Below, in pieces: positions 30,473 through 39,901 of a stretch of DNA of 64,000 nucleotides. A program made the translations under genes and the position numbers. Source of the DNA: Trichosphaerium sp. ATCC 40318 (taxonomy: Eukaryota > Protista > Tubulinea). The stretch covers positions 1 to 64,000 of the forward strand of contig JALMLS010000483.1 in NCBI GenBank assembly GCA_038496445.1. The letters run 5' to 3'. Numbering within the stretch: position 1 is the stretch's first letter; each line of letters opens with the position of its first letter. The notes below the pieces were generated by a model. The model worked only from the letters and a program-made list of their open reading frames with translations. It was not told the DNA's origin and ran no database searches.

Positions 30473-31693
30473 ATGAACTCAAACAGAGCATTCTTTGATG
30501 AGATACCTGTTGAAGTAGTTATTTATATTCTAGAATACGTTTCCGTGCTATCTATGCACTCAGTTGTACGTACATCCAAATTATTGTCAAACGTCGCCAA
30601 AAAGTACCTGGGATACACAAATAGACGAGATATTATCATCAAAACGAAGAAAAAGCTTAAGAAACTGTACACAAAGGAACCTCATCTTATTACAACAAAT
30701 ACGCTTACTATCAAGTTCCGTATGTACCAAAAGCATGTAGATTACCTTTCAGGAGTTCATTCGCTCAGGATATTGTCAAAGTTCAGTAAAGAGGTAGACT
30801 TTTCTGATTTTAAGGACATTACAAGCTTAGACTTTAATTCCTGCAAGTCAGTGACTGACGATCATCTGAAACAACTTGCTGGAATACAAAAAATATCTCT
30901 TAATGACACGTGCATTACAGATAAAGGTGTAAAAGCATTAGGATTAGCTGGCGTCCATGAAATTGGTTTAAGTTACTGCAATGGTATTACAGATGAAGGC
31001 ATTGAGGCTTTAGCTGGTGTCCATACAATAGATTTAAGTTATTGTAATGGTATTACAGATGAAGGTATCAAGGCGTTGGCTGGTGTTCATGATATTAATC
31101 TAGCATGTTGCAGAACTGTAACTGATGTTGGTGTCAAAACATTAAAAGGTGTTCATACAATAGATTTACGCTATTGTACAAATGTCGGAGATAGTGGTAT
31201 TAAAGCATTAGCTGGAGCTCATACAATACACCTGTTCTTTACAAAAGTAACAGATGAAGGTGTTAAAGCACTTGCTGGAGCACATGAAATAAATGTTGGT
31301 TTTACAAAGGTGACAGATAAAAGTATTAAAGCACTATCTGGTGCTCATACTATTGGCCTGTACAATACTACAGTGACTGATAAATACCTTAAAGAATTGG
31401 CTGGCGTTCATTCTATAAACTTAGGGTATTGTGAAAACATAACAGATGAAGGAGTTAAAGCTTTAGTTGGTGTTCATACAATTAATCTTTCACACACAAA
31501 TGTGACAGATAAAGCACTTGGTGCTTTAAAAGGCGTTTGTATTATAAATGTAAAGGGCTGTGAACATGTTTCAAAGGCAGCTGTTAAAGAGCTTGTGAGT
31601 GATGGTGTACTTGATATTTCAGGTATGTGTTACACACCAGAGAAAACAAAATCAATGGGTATTAGTCGTAAGAACAATAGTTTATTTTACTAA
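30473..31693 (+). CDS. F-box + leucine-rich repeat protein (GVHTIDLS-type 21-22 aa repeats), intronless
   Basis: FDEIPVEVVIYILEYV F-box followed by about 12 repeats LxGVHTIxLxxxxxITDEGxKAL. Confidence 0.9.
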   Translation: MNSNRAFFDEIPVEVVIYILEYVSVLSMHSVVRTSKLLSNVAKKYLGYTNRRDIIIKTKKKLKKLYTKEPHLITTNTLTIKFRMYQKHVDYLSGVHSLRILSKFSKEVDFSDFKDITSLDFNSCKSVTDDHLKQLAGIQKISLNDTCITDKGVKALGLAGVHEIGLSYCNGITDEGIEALAGVHTIDLSYCNGITDEGIKALAGVHDINLACCRTVTDVGVKTLKGVHTIDLRYCTNVGDSGIKALAGAHTIHLFFTKVTDEGVKALAGAHEINVGFTKVTDKSIKALSGAHTIGLYNTTVTDKYLKELAGVHSINLGYCENITDEGVKALVGVHTINLSHTNVTDKALGALKGVCIINVKGCEHVSKAAVKELVSDGVLDISGMCYTPEKTKSMGISRKNNSLFY

Positions 31694-32752: not shown

Positions 32753-32964
32753 GTTTTTTTTCAAAGGGTACTACTCCCTTTGGGAATTTTCAAAAAGTCA
32801 CGTTTTTTTAACCGCCATATTTGGCGACTCTGAAGCATGCTCTCATGCCATAGTACCTAGCCATAGAGTTATTTATTGTTGTAATGAAGGAGCGTTTAAG
32901 AAAATAATTTTGATGGAAAACCAGTCTTATAACTATACTATTGCTTTATTGAAAGGATTTTACA

Positions 32965-35900
32965 TTAATTTGTAAACGGGTTATTCTTTAGTGTTGAGCA
33001 CCAAGCTAGAACTTGAGTTGCACTATCAGTAACCTTTGTACATTTCAACTTTTCAAGATTCTTTGCAGCGCTGACTTTACCACAAAAAACTACAATAGGA
33101 ATACTCTTCCATTCCTTGTGTTTACGTAACAGCCTATACACATCCTCATGAGCTTGAATTTAGGTACAAAAGTAGTAAGGACATACGTAATAAGATTATA
33201 TGCTGCATTCTCTTTACCATCATTCTTGCGATATCTATTTGTCATAACCATCAACTTCTTACCTTGTAAATGTCTCGCAATAGTCTCAAGCCATATTTTA
33301 AGCTCTGTGGATGACGTCATATTTATTATCTAAATACAGTCAAGACATGATAGTCAAATGCACAAACCGCACGTGAACTCTAAAGTTGCTTGATTTTTCT
33401 ATTTCTTTTTTCAATTGTTTGTTTTGATTGGATAAATTGTTATCAACCCAAAGAACAAGTTTCTCTGCATCACGCCATTCCAAGTTTTTATCTTTTAGTT
33501 GACTAAACACTATTCCATTGTTTTTCTTGACGTTGGCTGTATCAACACGTTTATAGTACACAATGTATCGAGGTAAGATCTAGTCAACAGTAAAGACATA
33601 CATGAACACATCTAAAGTAGCTAAGTACCTGATCTTTGTTGAAAATAACAATTTCGTCAGCTTCAGGATCCTCGTGCGGCTTACAAGGAACTTGAAGATC
33701 TTTAATATTTGCACTTCTTGTGACAACGTAATGTGAGTCGTATCCATCCTACACAAAAAAAATTAAACACTGGCTACAAAGCAAGATTTGTACAACTAAG
33801 CCTTTCCCAAGAAGTGATGAAGATGAATCTTTGAAAGGATCCTCAGTTACAGGATATGGTTTACCTGAAAATAACGTGAGATTGTTATACGATTCATTGT
33901 GTTTTATAAAACACACGTGCCCATCATGACCCAAGAGATAACCATACATTGAACTTTTTTTTTTTCAGCCTTCTCAGCGTACAATGAGCCTACAATCTTT
34001 GGTTATGTATAATGATTTTCTTAAGTATGTGTACCATAAGAAGGATACTGTGTGAAATATATACCATCACCTACATGATAATTACGTTAAATAGAACAGC
34101 AAAACTTACCAAAGTATCCTGGATCAGTCACTTTGATGCCCATCCGGTTTTTGTCTTTTGCATCCAAAAAGTTGTTTTCGGCTATTTTGAAGCATGTATC
34201 CTAAACACCAATAGAAATTCGAGCTAAATTTAAAGCTTGAACGTACTTCAGAAGTACCACTAAAAGCTGCTATGAGGTTAATACGTTCATTACCAGAGAC
34301 ACGCATGGTGTATTGCTCCAAATGAGTTAGAATCCTAAAGAGCAATAAATATGTAAGCCTAGAATGCTTCTTTACCATTGCTGCCACTCTTGCTTCTCTG
34401 TTCGCTTCAATGTATCTGAATCAGGTACTTGTTTAAGTGATTAGTTGAGATGTGATTTATAGTACTGGACATACTGTAAGTGTTATAGTTGGACTTTAAC
34501 AGTCTTTGCACTAATTTGTTATGTGTTTCTTGAAACTTTCTTTCAAGTACACGATTGCGTAGCACAGTAGTCTTTACTATCTCAAACAAAGAACTTCCAT
34601 CGTTTCCCACAAACTCATAGAACATATCACGAACACGAAGGTATTCCTCTTTGCGGTCCTTTAAAGTCCTTATAAGTCCTTATAAGTGCAAGAAAAATGA
34701 GTGTGATACATTAAAAGCTTCATTAGGTGTAAGATCAGTATACTCCAAATCTCCTTTTTGTTTCCAAAGGTGTTTGCGAGTTCCCAACCTTTTCTTTTTT
34801 ATTGTGTATCTAGTGATACTTGTTAATGGTAACAGCTAATAAACGTTTGTACTTAATACTGCTCCATAAAGGATTGAGAATACTTTTTTGCAAAGGAAAC
34901 CCCTGGATTAAGTCATTGGCGCTTAGTTGTAGACCTGTAAAGGTGCATTTCCTGCCGTGTTTAATTTCTTGATCAGAAAGTGGCACTATTTTACCAATTA
35001 AAGCCCCACAAGGGCATATTGGATAGCATTTAAGACTAAACTCAGTGCACTCTTTGGCAAGATGTTCCTAAAAAGTGTAAGTTTCTAAAACCTGAAAGCA
35101 ATAGTACCTTCCATGTCTCTGGAACAAGACCACGGACAACAATAGTAATATTCTCATTATTGAGGTATAAACACATGACGTTCCCATCTGTATCTTTTAG
35201 AATCATAGAGTTACAAAACAACTTGTATCTACTATCATGCAATCCTATAAAAACCCACTTAATAGAAGTTGTGCAGCTATTGAGGTGTACTTCTTAACTT
35301 TCCTTGAAGTTCATTAAAAACATCAACAGTTATTGGCCTGTTTTCTCTTCTTAAATTGAAAGCTAGTATTCGAACAGTGTTGTAAAAGGTAATATATTGT
35401 CGTTCAGAGTACTTAACTTGTACTTGACAACATTTGTTTTTGGCATCCATATACTTGTATAGTAGTGTTTTCTTTCCCTCTAATAAAGCAATAAGTCAAA
35501 TAATATTCTCACTTTTTTCTGGAATTTGTTTACCACGCTTATCTTTTTTCTCAAAGTGATGAACTCTTAAGATAGTATTATTTTGCCTCCTGTCCTTTAT
35601 AAACATCTCTTGGTGATCACTTTGCATAGGTGGAGGTAGGTACATCATCTCAGCCTCAGCTCTCAAGCTATAAAACAAGTATCCTTTTTGGCCATAGTTT
35701 TTCTAAGCAACCAAAGTCAGCAGGCTATATATCAAGTGAGCAACCTAAAAAATACTATACCTCTTCTTCTGTATTGAGCTTGTAACATATGTTGAGTGCT
35801 TCCATAAAAGATAAAATTGAATTGCATTCTTTATCAGTAATTGCCATAAGGCTTGGTATGGATTTGATTTTTTCTTTAGCAACACAATAGCTTACAATTG

Positions 35901-37959
35901 CTGTTCTCCTTGTCTTTAAGTTCTTGGTATATCCATTTATTCGTTTGATATGTTGTTCTGGACCTACAAAACTGGCAATAACATGGGCAATTGTTTCTGG
36001 TCTCATACAAATCCATTGCGTTTGCTACAAAGATTAATAATGGTTTTAGCAACAATACTCTCAGTACCTTTGTATATATTACCTTACCAGCACAATGCAA
36101 GTATTCAATTGCTAATAACAAATTGGTTTTTTCTTTGAAATGAGCCATGTCACTTCTAGCTGGCGTTTGTAATGCGTAATTATTTTTCTCCAAGTATTTA
36201 TGCAGTCCATCTCTATCTTTGTCAAATAAGCTGATGGTCTTTTAACGTACATTGTCCATAGTAGCTTCGATGAATAGTCAAATAAGTATAATGACAAAAG
36301 AGAAGCTAAATATATTGCACATATCACTGGAATAGGTGTTTTGATAGTTTGTATACAATCTGATAACACTTTTTTGAGTATGTTAACACTTTTGCCTTAT
36401 TGGAAAAAAAACCAAAGGTGAGCAAGTAAATAGTAAACAATGCAAAAGTTACACATACTAGATAAAGCTGACATGACCAAGTTACTATCAAAAATTACCG
36501 ATAGCTTATTTTCAGGTATTTTTGATACATATTGACTGATTTGCCTCTTGATATTACCAACAATTTCACCTATTGCATCTTTTGGCTTGTTTACAAGATC
36601 AAATTTGTTTCCAACAACTATCAGTGGTCTTGGTTTTTTAGCATAAAGCAAACCTTTGGAATCAAGAACGTCTAACCAGTGACAAATATGTTGTGTTTGG
36701 GTCGTTAAATCAGTTGATACGTCAACCTTTTTTAGACAAACAAGTGAATGAAGATAAATTTAATTGTTAAAAATGGTGTACCACTATCAAGTAAATCGAC
36801 TCTTTGTCGGAAAAGAATGATTTATGACAAGTAAGATACTCTATTTGGCCTCCAAAGTCATATGCAATGCTTTCAACTTTCTTTACCAGGTTCAAAGAGC
36901 GAATGCTAAGTGATATTGTGGATGTGGCAATGTCTTTGGATCGTTTGTCTTCAAGCTTGTTGAGTATCGTCGTTTTACCTTCAGTTAAAGCTTAGAAACA
37001 TGCAGCTTGTGGGACAAAGAGCCTTAGTACCTGAACCCCCATGCCCAAGCACAAGTATCTTTATATCTCCAAATAGTTTAAGGCGCATTGGAAAGACCCT
37101 TTCAGGTGTACTCAGGCAAGCATCATACACTCTATTGACTCCATATAGTGAAACGAGTGAAATCTCCATATAATGAGATGCACCTAATTCTCTTGCCATT
37201 TGAGCACCTTGTATTGTACTTAGAGAACAAAACAAAATCAAACTATACCATACAATCGCTGTAAGTGATTGCTCTTTTTCCTATTTTCCTGTCTCCATCC
37301 CCAACAAGCACCAAACGTGTGTATGGAGCCAAACGGCGTATTTCAGGCACCCACTAGTAGCAGTATCACGTGAAAGTACAAAGACATAAAAGAATTGAAA
37401 AAAAAAAATTAAGTCTGTTTGAGTGTGCAGTCACTGCGCATGAGGGTTTTGTTTTCATTGTAACAATACCCAAATAATACCTTATCTTTTATAGAGTTAA
37501 AGCTGTTTGTATCAGTAATAGAGAAAATAAGAACAAATACATCAGCCACCTAAAAAAAAAAAAATTATCAAATTTAATTCGCTGTTAGCTAAAACACAAC
37601 TATGGTTTCGCTAAAAACTGAAACTATTTCACAGCTTTATTAACTTACTGGATATGTTTCAAATCTATTGGGATCAGATTCTTTGGTATGCTGAAGTAAT
37701 TAGCTAATAATATGAACACCTCTTTGTACCAACATCCTCAAATTAAAGCCAGATTTGGTGTATCGCCGCTCTGTGATGTATTTTTTAAAAATCTAAGCGT
37801 TGACACAGTAAACAATCTGAACAACTTACCTCTGTCTGTTTTGTGTACACAATCAAAGTTTAAACGATTGATCTCAAAAGCGTTTAGAAGCGATGATTTA
37901 ATGTTATTCAAATCATTGCCAACAATCGTGACAGTCAACCAACAGTGTGAAGGTTCCAT
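32965..37959 (-). CDS. Multidomain protein: degenerate Rho-like domain + Roc GTPase + COR-like + PARP-like ADP-ribosyltransferase + receiver-like domain
   Basis: Rho-like: YPVADVFVLIFSI..SFNSIKDKWVPEIRR..GAQMARELGASHYMEIS. Roc: ILVLGHGGSGKTT, YDFGGQIEY..HKSF, VVGNKFD. ART: EEYLRVRDMF, RNRVLERKF, NERINLIAAFSGT, DPGYFGDGIYFTQ, SWVMMGKPYPVTE, GYDSHYV, DEIVIF..QILPRYIV. C-terminal LWVDNN..MTNRYRK..VFCG. Confidence 0.82.
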
Positions 37960-38277
37960 TGGCCTTACGATACTTGATTTTTAGTGTTTAGCTCCTTAAA
38001 TTAGGAATCTAAATACCACTCACGTTTAATCTGCTAGATTTTACTAGCCTGCGTTTGCGAAGGTTTTGCCATTTGTTGAAAAGGATACTGTCCTTAATTC
38101 TGATTAAGATGTTAGTAAAAAGTTGCGCATTATATAGGCTGTTACGTAAACACAAGGAATGGAAGAGTATTCCTATTGTCGTTTTCTGTGGTAAAGTCAG
38201 CGCTAGAAAATTGTAGAATAGACAAAACAATCTTAAATTGCCTATTTATTTAACTAATTACTAACAAATTGAACTAT

Positions 38278-39901
38278 TTACAAGGTGTACAGTCCACAAT
38301 ATTGAATACCCATTGACTCAACAGCTGCTTGTGTAAGTTTGGTATTGTTCAATCGTGCAACCTGTTTTAAAGATGGTAAGTGCTTCAAGCAACCATTTGT
38401 AATCTGTGGGCAGTAACCTATGGTGAGGCGCTCAAGGTTGACCAATGTATTGAAACCCAAGTCTGTTATATTATAGCAATTGTGAAGCCCAAGGCGTTTG
38501 ACATTGGACAATGATTTGATTCCATCATCTGTTACATACCTTCCTTCTTTGATATGGACAGCGTGCGTGTCACCAAGTTGTTTGAGCCACGAGTCTTTTG
38601 GTAAAGAAAGACTAATCTCATGAACACCTTTGAGTGCTTTGATTCCTTCAACTGTAATATTATCACAACCTTTTAGGTTAATTGTGTGTACACCAACAAA
38701 ACTTTGGAGTGCTTTATCTGTCACTTCAGTCCAACAAAGGTTAATAGTGTGAGCACCAACAAGTGCTTTAAATCCTCTATCACGCACTTTAGTATTGCTC
38801 AAGTCAATAGTATGAACACCTGCAAGAGGTATAACACCTTCATCTGTAATTTCTTCACAAAAGCTCAAGTCAAGTGTATGAACTCCAACAAGTGCTTTCA
38901 CTCCGTTATCAGTTATAGAGGTCTGAGAAAGGTTAATAGTATGTATGCCAACAAGTGCTTTGACTCCTTCATCTGTCACTGATGTACGACAAAGGTTAAT
39001 AGTATGAACACCTGTAAGAGGTATAACACCTTCATCTGTAATTTGTTCACAATAGCTCAAGTCAAGTGTATGAACTCCAATAAGTGCTTTCACTCCTTCA
39101 TCTCTCACTGCAGTCCAAGAAAGGTCAATTGTATGAACACCTTTGAGTGCTATCACTCCTTCATCTGTTACAGATGTCCAAGAAAGTTGAATAGTATGTA
39201 TACCAATGAGTGCTTTGACTCCTTCATCTGTCACTGATGTACGACAAAGGTTAATAGTATGAACACCAACTAAAGCTTTAACTCCTTCATCTGTAATTTT
39301 CTTGCAAAAGCTCAAGTCAAGTGTATGAACTCCAACAAGTGCTTTCACTCCATTATCAGTTATAGAGGTCTGAGAAAGGTTAATAGTATGTATGCCAACA
39401 AGTGCTTTGACTCCTTCATCTGTCACTGATGTATCAGAAAGGTCAATTGTATGAACTCCTGCCAAATATATCATTACTTTGTCTGTAATTTGTCGACAAC
39501 CCCTCAAATCAATTGTATGAACTCCTGCAAATTTTTCCACAATCTTGTCAGAAGGAAACCTGAAAATTGTATTATTTGCTAAATAGATTCTTGTGTGTTT
39601 CATGATCCCACAATGCTTTACAACTTCTTTCACTTGTTTTTCTGTTGTTATACGTATACTATGGTATCCAACAATGTCGTGAATGATAGAAGAAACGATA
39701 CGACATGTTTGACAAGCTGCAAATCGCGATTTAGTTGTGTGACTTAAAATAATCGCTATAATCTCTGTAGGCATATCCAGTAACGTTTTTTGAGTGCTAC
39801 AAATTATTTTAGAGCAATACAATCAACATAAACGTTTACCTTTGATTTAATGTATCAGACTCCAAATCATACGGTTTTTTAATACCTTTTGTGCGATCCA
39901 T
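38278..39901 (-). CDS. F-box + leucine-rich repeat protein (GVHTIDLS-type); one short 5' intron
   Basis: MDRTKGIKK exon spliced (intron about 39797-39839) to LLDMPTEIIAIILSH F-box, then about 17 LRRs. Confidence 0.9.

Follow-up and report, generated by a model that had tools for sequence, protein, structure and literature searches.

What kind of protein is encoded on the minus strand between positions 37959 and 32965 of the Trichosphaerium sp. ATCC 40318 DNA analysed here (64,000 nucleotides of contig JALMLS010000483.1, hereafter the window), and how could its parts work together? An earlier note, made from the letters of the window, had read there the fusion of a Rho-like domain, a Roc GTPase, a COR-like region, a PARP-type ADP-ribosyltransferase (ART) and a receiver-like domain. 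Judged from its sequence, the region is one intact 26-exon gene for a Roco-family protein. The reading we favour, with a probability of about 0.6, is that of a Roco GTP switch which, by analogy with known members, would carry a pseudo-Rac at its front and an ART followed by a pseudo-receiver as its output, the copy in the window being a weak or regulatory member of its family.

The predicted gene runs from the ATG at 37959, the first one past an in-frame stop, to the TAA at 32965, and its 26 exons (E1 to E26) form a single open frame of 3555 nt coding for 1184 amino acids (aa), in which the sole stop codon is the terminal one and the phase is unbroken over the 25 junctions. All 25 introns are of the GT-AG type, with lengths of 38-151 nt, a median of about 49 nt and donors that are mostly 'gta'. 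When the minus strand from 38100 to 32800 was translated in three frames, the exons showed up as a chain of short open segments. Intron 9 was set at 38 nt (36213-36250) by the DNA alignment with the closest paralog and the listing of all frame-preserving junctions, and intron 25 was positioned through comparison with paralog L004. A 20-nt intron 9 with the same donor was discarded for the 38-nt version; a read-through of the TGA at 37740 and a 93-nt intron 1 were discarded as well, the retained model of E2 and E3 restoring a Rac-like 'YP-x-DVF' register that is kept in paralogs L005 and L003. The exons were searched singly, with database homologues as proxies for the longer regions, and the rows of short exon fragments that had been scattered by MAFFT were dropped from the alignments used. 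All the motifs quoted in the earlier note are found within 32965-37959, on the minus strand and in the order it gave: GNDLNNIKS in E1, GDGD in E5, GHGGSG and KTT on either side of the E6/E7 splice, DFGGQ in E7, NKFD in E8, FSGT in E18, GYFG and DGIYF on either side of the E19/E20 splice, GYDSH and DEIVIF in E23, LWVDN in E24, TNRYR in E25 and VFCG in E26.

Since the splice model of the locus is predicted from sequence, separate genes could have been wrongly joined in it, either a small Rac-like gene and a Roco gene or a Roco gene and a PARP gene. This is extremely unlikely, for no stop or start lies between the domains, the phase is continuous at every junction, and single frames in relatives hold Roc, COR, PARP and receiver together, as in a Trinity transcript of Clydonella and a 3856-nt Logan contig. 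Furthermore, the fusion of the Rac-like and Roc parts depends on no splice, because the Rac-like end with its G5 region, the linker and the beginning of the Roc P-loop all lie in the single unbroken exon E6.

The gene is far beyond chance, because its exon order recurs at more than 30 paralogous loci, its exons are colinear with full-length database proteins and its dN/dS against paralogs is low, at 0.13-0.36. In the source assembly, to whose 642 contigs and 70 Mb the genome-wide counts given here refer, the same exons in the same order occur at five other places, which represent three further loci (C49/C399, C111/C403 and C37), and the order recurs more distantly at over 30 additional ones. 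The ratio dN/dS, estimated exon by exon by the method of Nei and Gojobori against four paralogous loci, is 0.17-0.32 overall and below about 0.5 in every domain; it is highest in the pseudo-Rac (0.36-0.51), and its values of 0.10-0.27 in the ART exons denote purifying selection. It is because of these low ratios that the gene is, as far as its sequence tells, not decaying. A decaying or unexpressed copy in a large and fast-turning-over family would be in keeping with the paralogous last-exon fragment lying just upstream (38130-38210, plus strand) and with a pseudo-Rac that is the most degenerate of its kind. A pseudogene is nevertheless very unlikely in view of a complete frame of 1184 codons that no stop interrupts, of 25 introns that are all canonical, of the low dN/dS and of the intactness of all the Roc G motifs.

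These Roc motifs, which the earlier note had already described as intact, indeed appear so from G1 to G5, those read being G1 (GHGGSGKTT), G3 (DFGGQ), G4 (NKFD) and G5 (SAL), in E6-E8. Pfam Roc matches E7 with E=3.7e-5 and 24.4 bits, a partial domain that falls under the 27-bit cut-off, versus 48.3 bits for the colinear homologue P0006. A six-frame scan of the genome for Roc was saturated by other small GTPases and could not be used for counting. Directly C-terminal of Roc, a COR fold is supported by modelling. The Pfam COR-A match is marginal (E 0.04-0.17) and recurs at the homologous place in four members (the window gene, P0006, P0012 and P0016), and a sequence profile of the region gave nothing useful against PDB sequences. 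The AlphaFold2 model of residues 320-720 of P0006, a segment to which E11, E13 and E14 map, has a pLDDT of 68, with about 90 over the first 180 residues. Its top seven Foldseek matches are COR structures of Roco proteins or LRRK1 (best E=1.8e-4), and VIA-align places on top LRRK2 (Z 8.8, rmsd 2.1, 88 aligned), the Roco protein of Chlorobium tepidum (Z 8.7, rmsd 3.3, 143 aligned) and LRRK1, at Z 8.2-8.8. The COR-like region noticed earlier thus receives the support of a fold, through a homologue.

The presence of a PARP-fold ART domain in the C-terminal half is likewise supported by the structural model of a homologue, which bears out the PARP-type ART of the earlier note. The AlphaFold2 model of P0006 700-1131 has a pLDDT of 83.9; the underlying alignment, window exons included, was checked row by row, and these exons align cleanly and colinearly to the sequence of the model. 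Among its top 50 PDB matches Foldseek lists nothing but PARP ART domains (best E=3e-9), and for model residues 15-268 VIA-align finds tankyrase 2 (Z 15.8, rmsd 2.8, 177 aligned) together with PARP13, PARP10, PARP15 and the TASOR pseudo-PARP, within Z 14.9-15.8 and rmsd 2.7-3.2. Homologues pass the cut-off of the Pfam PARP profile PF00644, with 27.7-48.7 bits, values of 47.9 and 48.7 being among them.

The catalytic triad of this domain reads S-Y-E and not H-Y-E (FSGT, GIYF and DEIVIF), whereas the family reads [FLW]HGT at the first position; the substitution, already pointed out in the earlier note, was read in E18 and compared with the paralogs. Of the 29 paralogs compared, 25 have the triad His, as have all database relatives. 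Among the closest loci, C399 has Ser, C111/C403 has Asn and C37 has His. The comparison of the window gene with C399 (L005) gives a dS of 0.18 in the 3' half, which comprises the ART and the receiver, versus 0.7-1.1 in the 5' half; this suggests that the two loci have recently undergone gene conversion or recombination with each other, and it would be because of this event in their 3' halves that both have exchanged His for Ser. In PARP1, the residue at the position of the triad His binds the adenosine ribose of NAD+, and the PARP members devoid of this His (PARP13, PARP9 and the TASOR pseudo-PARP) have little or no activity. By analogy, the change from His to Ser argues for poor NAD+ binding by the window copy. 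Could the Ser nevertheless be tolerated, the window copy working as a fully active GTP-regulated ADP-ribosyltransferase like its His-bearing paralogs? The Tyr (GIYF), the nicotinamide-side Ser/Tyr pair (PSYGSLY) and the Glu (DEIVIF) are kept, and the ART exons are under the purifying selection mentioned above. We hold full activity to be unlikely, however, for the prevalence of the His in the family indicates that this position is normally constrained, and the His-less PARPs just cited set an unfavourable precedent.

The last domain is, according to the same homologue model, a pseudo-receiver of CheY fold, as the LWVDN..TNRYR..VFCG signature of the earlier note had led one to expect. Over model residues 307-432, VIA-align matches the receiver (REC) domain of PorX (Z 13.5, rmsd 2.0, 113 aligned), and LvrB and many other REC domains follow, with Z 11.6-13.5 and rmsd 2.0-2.7 over about 113-120 residues; the look-alikes proposed by a protein language model are CheY-like clusters. 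Where a receiver has its phospho-acceptor Asp, strand 3 ends here in the Asn of TNRYR, and TN stands at that place in every member seen, the TNR.R motif being invariant in the family. From the secondary structure of the model and the alignments, the Thr/Ser of strand 4 has become Cys (VFCG) and the Lys of strand 5 is absent. Because of the Asn, the Cys and the missing Lys at these key positions, the domain is predicted not to be phosphorylatable in the usual way.

At the other end of the protein, the N-terminal domain is best described, from its sequence, as a Rac-derived pseudo-GTPase. The Rac-like exons of the window gene are weak when taken alone: Pfam Ras matches E4 with E=0.019, and the PDB matches of E6, 13 out of 13, are residues 145-177 of Rac1 or Rac3, with E 1.4-1.9. 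The homologous exons of paralog L003 (contig C37) match Rac1, Rac2 and Cdc42 at 1e-11 to 1e-12, Rho-insert region included. The Rac origin of the window domain is deduced from these matches because the series of paralogs ties its exons to those of L003, and the alignment of the pseudo-Racs upholds the degenerate Rho fold of the earlier note, with its altered P-loop and G4. Rac-type sequence is kept in places, e.g. KW.PE..., ITY.QG and Y.E.S. The nucleotide-binding motifs GxxxxGK[ST], DxxGQ and [NT]KxD are absent from the window copy, which has GNDLNNIKS, LHTKE and GDGD instead. In the alignment with the canonical Rac of this genome (L040 on contig C189, with GDGAVGKT, TKLD and a CAAX box), all the pseudo-Racs except L004 have in common a one-residue insertion and the loss of the second Gly in the P-loop, and all have lost [NT]KxD. 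The window copy additionally lacks DxxGQ (switch II) and the Rho insert, the latter being present in L003, L005 and L041, and it is the most degenerate of those aligned; switch I is almost intact in L003. No CAAX box is found in the window pseudo-Rac, which continues into Roc. The junction exon E6 is matched at only five other places in the genome, corresponding to the three close paralogous loci, so that a pseudo-Rac N-terminus is seen in the Roco family at four loci of this genome only, that of the window gene included.

Two loci on contig C70 carry related domains. L039 (G000:C70:116877-120011, plus strand, about 950-1860 in locus coordinates) is a stand-alone pseudo-Rac gene: its P-loop has the same one-residue insertion (GSDYDQVKT), GAQVELRD stands where NKxD would be expected, and a CAAX box is missing. 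In L041 (G000:C70:202097-205234, minus strand, about 2140 to 690 in locus coordinates), a small multi-exon gene, a pseudo-Rac is joined straight to the pseudo-receiver of the family, without Roc, COR or ART in between; the gene reads GNDENEIKA in a pseudo-Rac that has kept its Rho insert, and its pseudo-receiver is recognised by ..LVLWVDASLSDQNK.., LWVDA.., ..VITNRYRKTDGG.. and ..IPIIIYCG... The pseudo-Rac therefore accompanies the pseudo-receiver whether a Roco core is present or not. As the stand-alone pseudo-Rac and the pseudo-Rac-receiver gene both have the P-loop insertion and lack NKxD, like the domain fused to Roc, the latter would descend from an already dead Rac-like lineage, established in this organism before the Roco fusion.

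The Roco family itself is strongly expanded in this genome, E24, the exon at the junction of ART and receiver, matching 45 places in the 70 Mb. Contig C3 (G000:C3:870000-1000100) holds at least seven copies within about 130 kb, with E24 matches at 873899, 917602, 935713, 943863, 957609, 987132 and 999939, which look like a tandem cluster. Four of the distant copies were extended upstream, and in all four Roc lies about 1 kb before COR and is preceded by a 390-500-aa exon of MORN repeats (Pfam 1e-27 to 1e-43). A full HMMER search with the 201-aa unbroken open frame of paralog L029, which goes from the COR-B end through the 'HGT' strand, retrieved 25 relatives, unnamed or annotated as 'hypothetical', including full-length proteins with Pfam Roc and PARP above threshold: P0006 (1131 aa, from the 3856-nt Logan contig), P0047 (933 aa), P0019 of Mastigamoeba balamuthi and P0016 of Clydonella sp. 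ATCC 50884, the latter with ankyrin repeats as well. Exons E7-E26 of the window gene are colinear on P0006 and P0047. From these sequences, the Roc-COR-ART-receiver core of the family appears constant and its N-terminal module exchangeable, being of MORN, pseudo-Rac or, in Clydonella, ankyrin type. The statement of the earlier note that the architecture was not recognised has therefore to be divided: the pseudo-Rac front end was found nowhere outside this genome, whereas the core is present in other amoebozoans and many times in the genome itself. A distant relative, P0028 (1142 aa), lies on the ENA metagenome contigs L043 and L044, of 24-40 kb, compact and apparently intron-poor, with neighbours of eukaryotic type (an SMG1-like PI3K-related kinase, a cytochrome P450 and a protein kinase).

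A family of this kind may also be read as one of guard or decoy immune receptors, in which the integrated pseudo-Rac would mimic the host Rac, its binding or modification by a pathogen effector would fire Roc-COR, and the ART would then ADP-ribosylate targets or deplete NAD+. The size and clustering of the family, with its 45 E24 matches and the seven on C3, speak in favour of such receptors, as do the swapping of the N-terminal modules (pseudo-Rac, MORN, ankyrin), also seen in other receptor families, the almost intact switch I of L003 and the fact that the pseudo-Rac has the highest dN/dS among the domains; moreover, brown-algal ROCOs have been proposed as immune receptors (PMC11378527, PMC3341825). 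We find this interpretation doubtful. The dN/dS stays below 1 even in the pseudo-Rac, and the window ART is devoid of the triad His. Furthermore, the dead P-loop and the lost NKxD are common to the stand-alone pseudo-Rac and the pseudo-Rac-receiver gene: since the domain would already have been a pseudo-GTPase before the fusion, it was presumably not copied from a working Rac target, which somewhat weakens the guard idea. As switch II and the Rho insert are gone from the window copy too, the Rac serving as bait would be one that died long ago and, in this copy, is very eroded. A wider version makes innate immune receptors of the amoebal Roco proteins as a whole, the pseudo-Rac being a bait for pathogen effectors or regulators that target Rac, the release of Roc-COR leading to ADP-ribosylation or NAD+ consumption by the active members, and the pseudo-Rac-receiver protein and the Ser copies acting as regulators; we regard it as distinctly unlikely.

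How does the protein compare with known systems? Roco proteins whose output is a kinase (human LRRK2 and LRRK1, Dictyostelium Roco4), like the bacterial Roco of Chlorobium tepidum, have Roc directly before COR, as does the window gene, with a variable N-terminal interaction module in front and an output domain after COR; the COR model itself resembles C. tepidum Roco, LRRK1, LRRK2 and M. barkeri Roco2. The output of the known proteins is, however, a kinase with WD40 and their N-terminus is made of leucine-rich repeats (LRR) or ankyrin repeats, whereas the window gene has a PARP-fold ART with a pseudo-receiver and a Rac-derived pseudo-GTPase, and the COR of its family is only marginally similar in sequence to Pfam COR-A and COR-B. 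The MORN-type paralogs, the Clydonella and Mastigamoeba relatives, P0006 and P0047 have the same core, exon by exon and motif by motif, but with a MORN or ankyrin N-terminus and with the His of the H-Y-E triad, in place of the pseudo-Rac and the Ser of the window copy. With the catalytic domains of the PARP/ARTD enzymes (tankyrase, PARP10, PARP15) and the pseudo-PARPs (PARP13/ZC3HAV1, TASOR), the family has in common the ART fold and the motifs HG[TS], G.GIYF, S..Y and E[IY]V[IV][FY]; unlike them, the window copy has a Ser for the NAD-binding His, is without a regulatory helical domain, WGR, macro or zinc-finger partner, and is fused to a GTPase switch. The (beta-alpha)5 fold is that of CheY-like receivers, from which the family differs by the Asn for Asp, the Cys for Thr/Ser, the missing Lys and the extra TNR.R, and the Rac-type sequence is that of the Rho-family GTPases, from which the window copy differs by the absence of P-loop, switch II, NKxD, Rho insert and CAAX. 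The fusion of pseudo-Rac and Roc may be compared with the atypical multi-GTPase proteins RhoBTB and Miro. In the immune receptors of the NLR-ID type, the core is a STAND NTPase (NB-ARC or NACHT), instead of which the window gene has Roc-COR. No Roco protein with a PARP output is described in the literature searched (the PARP-family surveys PMC2964712 and PMC4245714, Roco reviews and PMC8195603). As far as this literature goes, the PARP output on a Roco core is new, and the pseudo-Rac front end is a sub-variant that no other genome has shown to date.

The working that we propose for the Roco switch with its ART and pseudo-receiver output combines these elements. If the protein works like LRRK2, Dictyostelium Roco4 and C. 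tepidum Roco, its Roc-COR part would respond to GTP by a change of conformation or of dimerisation and thereby control the C-terminal output, which in the His-bearing paralogs would be an NAD+-dependent ADP-ribosylation; the 'GTP-gated ADP-ribosylating effector' of the earlier note is a reasonable analogy with Roco proteins. The pseudo-receiver would most likely be a docking or autoregulatory domain. The two end domains, pseudo-Rac and pseudo-receiver, would probably contact each other or a common partner, a contact that is proposed because the small gene L041 joins the same two domains directly. The window copy would most likely be a weak or inactive transferase, because Ser replaces the His whose counterpart in PARPs touches the adenosine ribose of NAD+; its role would then be one of regulation or scaffolding, for which it might pair with active paralogs by way of COR.

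Several points weigh against this proposal. The single transcript and the splice sites of the window gene are a predicted model, and GTP binding, NAD+ binding, ADP-ribosylation and the domain contacts of its protein are all predicted as well, by analogy. The evidence for the fold comes from a homologue that is about 40-55% identical in the conserved exons, and the COR-B half of the COR model is of low confidence. The short exons of the window (12-69 aa each) gave no match to Pfam PARP and the locus is unlisted in the six-frame scan of the genome for PARP, the longer open frames of paralogs being likewise unmatched by this profile. The single ART and C-terminal exons of the window gene were matched by no other Pfam profile either. 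Finally, a Ser or an Asn at the position of the triad His might still allow some NAD+ binding.

Table 1. Exons of the predicted Roco gene and a downstream hexamer, in window coordinates
Feature	Position	Strand	Content and basis
Exon 1	37830..37959	-	Start codon, pseudo-Rac strand 1, degenerate P-loop GNDLNNIKS; alignment with canonical Rac and pseudo-Racs
Exon 2	37730..37770	-	Pseudo-Rac strand 3 region, ERRYTKSGFNLRML; frame common to paralogs L005 and L003
Exon 3	37649..37690	-	Pseudo-Rac, switch II remnant HTKESDPNRFETYP; DxxGQ gone
Exon 4	37481..37549	-	Pseudo-Rac, VADVFVLIFSITDTNSFNSIKDK; Pfam Ras E=0.019 and paralog matches
Exon 5	37254..37353	-	Pseudo-Rac, WVPEIRRLAPYTRLVLVGDGD...; NKxD gone (GDGD), Rho insert deleted
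Exon 6	37031..37207	-	Pseudo-Rac end (ARELGASHYMEIS..VYDACL), linker, Roc P-loop start KILVLGHGGSG; one unbroken exon
Exon 7	36782..36978	-	Roc G1 (KTT) to G3 (DFGGQ); Pfam Roc E=3.7e-5; maps to P0006 171-232
Exon 8	36459..36726	-	Roc G4 (NKFD) and G5 (SAL)
Exon 9	36251..36395	-	Roc end, COR-A start
Exon 10	36068..36212	-	COR-A, first winged helix; preceded by intron 9 (38 nt)
Exon 11	35761..36024	-	COR-A, second winged helix; Pfam COR-A E=0.085; maps to P0006 405-490, confident part of the COR model
Exon 12	35534..35702	-	COR
Exon 13	35291..35479	-	COR
Exon 14	35108..35244	-	COR-B
Exon 15	34820..35067	-	COR-B end, Cys-rich stretch
Exon 16	34475..34668	-	ART N-terminal extension EEYLRVRDMFYEFVG...; model residues 15-115, within the PARP-fold matches
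Exon 17	34376..34415	-	Short linker exon ..EKQEWQQ; frame settled by paralogs
Exon 18	34247..34334	-	ART strand 1, FSGT at the PARP 'H-G-[ST]' position
Exon 19	34110..34200	-	ART, ..VTDPGYFG
Exon 20	34035..34070	-	ART, DGIYFTQYPSY; Tyr of triad
Exon 21	33915..33989	-	ART, SLYAEK..CMVISWVMMG
Exon 22	33794..33864	-	ART, KPYPVTEDPF...
Exon 23	33629..33748	-	ART, DGYDSHYVV...ADEIVIFNKDQ; Glu of triad
Exon 24	33373..33579	-	Last ART strand ILPRYIVYY, linker, receiver strand 1 LVLWVDNN
Exon 25	33187..33329	-	Pseudo-receiver strands 2-3; Asn at phospho-acceptor position, MVMTNRYR
Exon 26	32965..33133	-	Pseudo-receiver strands 4-5, IPIVVFCG..KVTDS.., stop codon
AATAAA hexamer	32945..32950	-	15 nt past the TAA; possible poly(A) signal, read from sequence

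The surroundings of the gene show three further features. Upstream of the start codon, the inverted fragment at 38130-38210 (plus strand, in the open frame 38055-38216) is 93% identical over 27 aa to the last exon of the gene (..YRLLRKHKEWKSIPIVVFCGKVSA..) and is probably the remnant of another family copy. Two single-exon genes, at 38278-39822 (minus strand) and 30473-31693 (plus strand), flank the Roco gene and combine an F-box-like N-terminus with many leucine-rich repeats of the form 'GVHTIDLS..TDEGVKAL'. Similar LRR genes adjoin the paralogs L034, on the same strand, and L005, on the opposite strand, and one lies directly upstream of the metagenomic relative P0028; as the LRR family looks large, this adjacency may be due to chance. 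The upstream F-box/LRR frame (38278-39822, minus strand) was considered as a part of the Roco gene and ruled out by its stop, by the Rac-type N-terminal start of the pseudo-Rac and by the opposite strand of the LRR gene in L005.

In conclusion, work on Roco proteins centres on LRRK2 and Parkinson's disease, where the manner in which Roc-COR controls the output domain is still open, and a natural family in which Roc-COR drives a PARP-type enzyme would offer an independent system for that question. If the proposed reading is true, the family would represent a route, undescribed as far as we found, by which a GTPase regulates ADP-ribosylation from within the same polypeptide. From the pseudo-Rac front end and the separate gene that joins pseudo-Rac and receiver, one may suspect that two 'dead' signalling domains work as specific partners. 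Amoebae host Legionella-like bacteria and giant viruses and, given its size, its clustering and the swapping of its modules, the family is a candidate for a system of conflict or immunity in these organisms.

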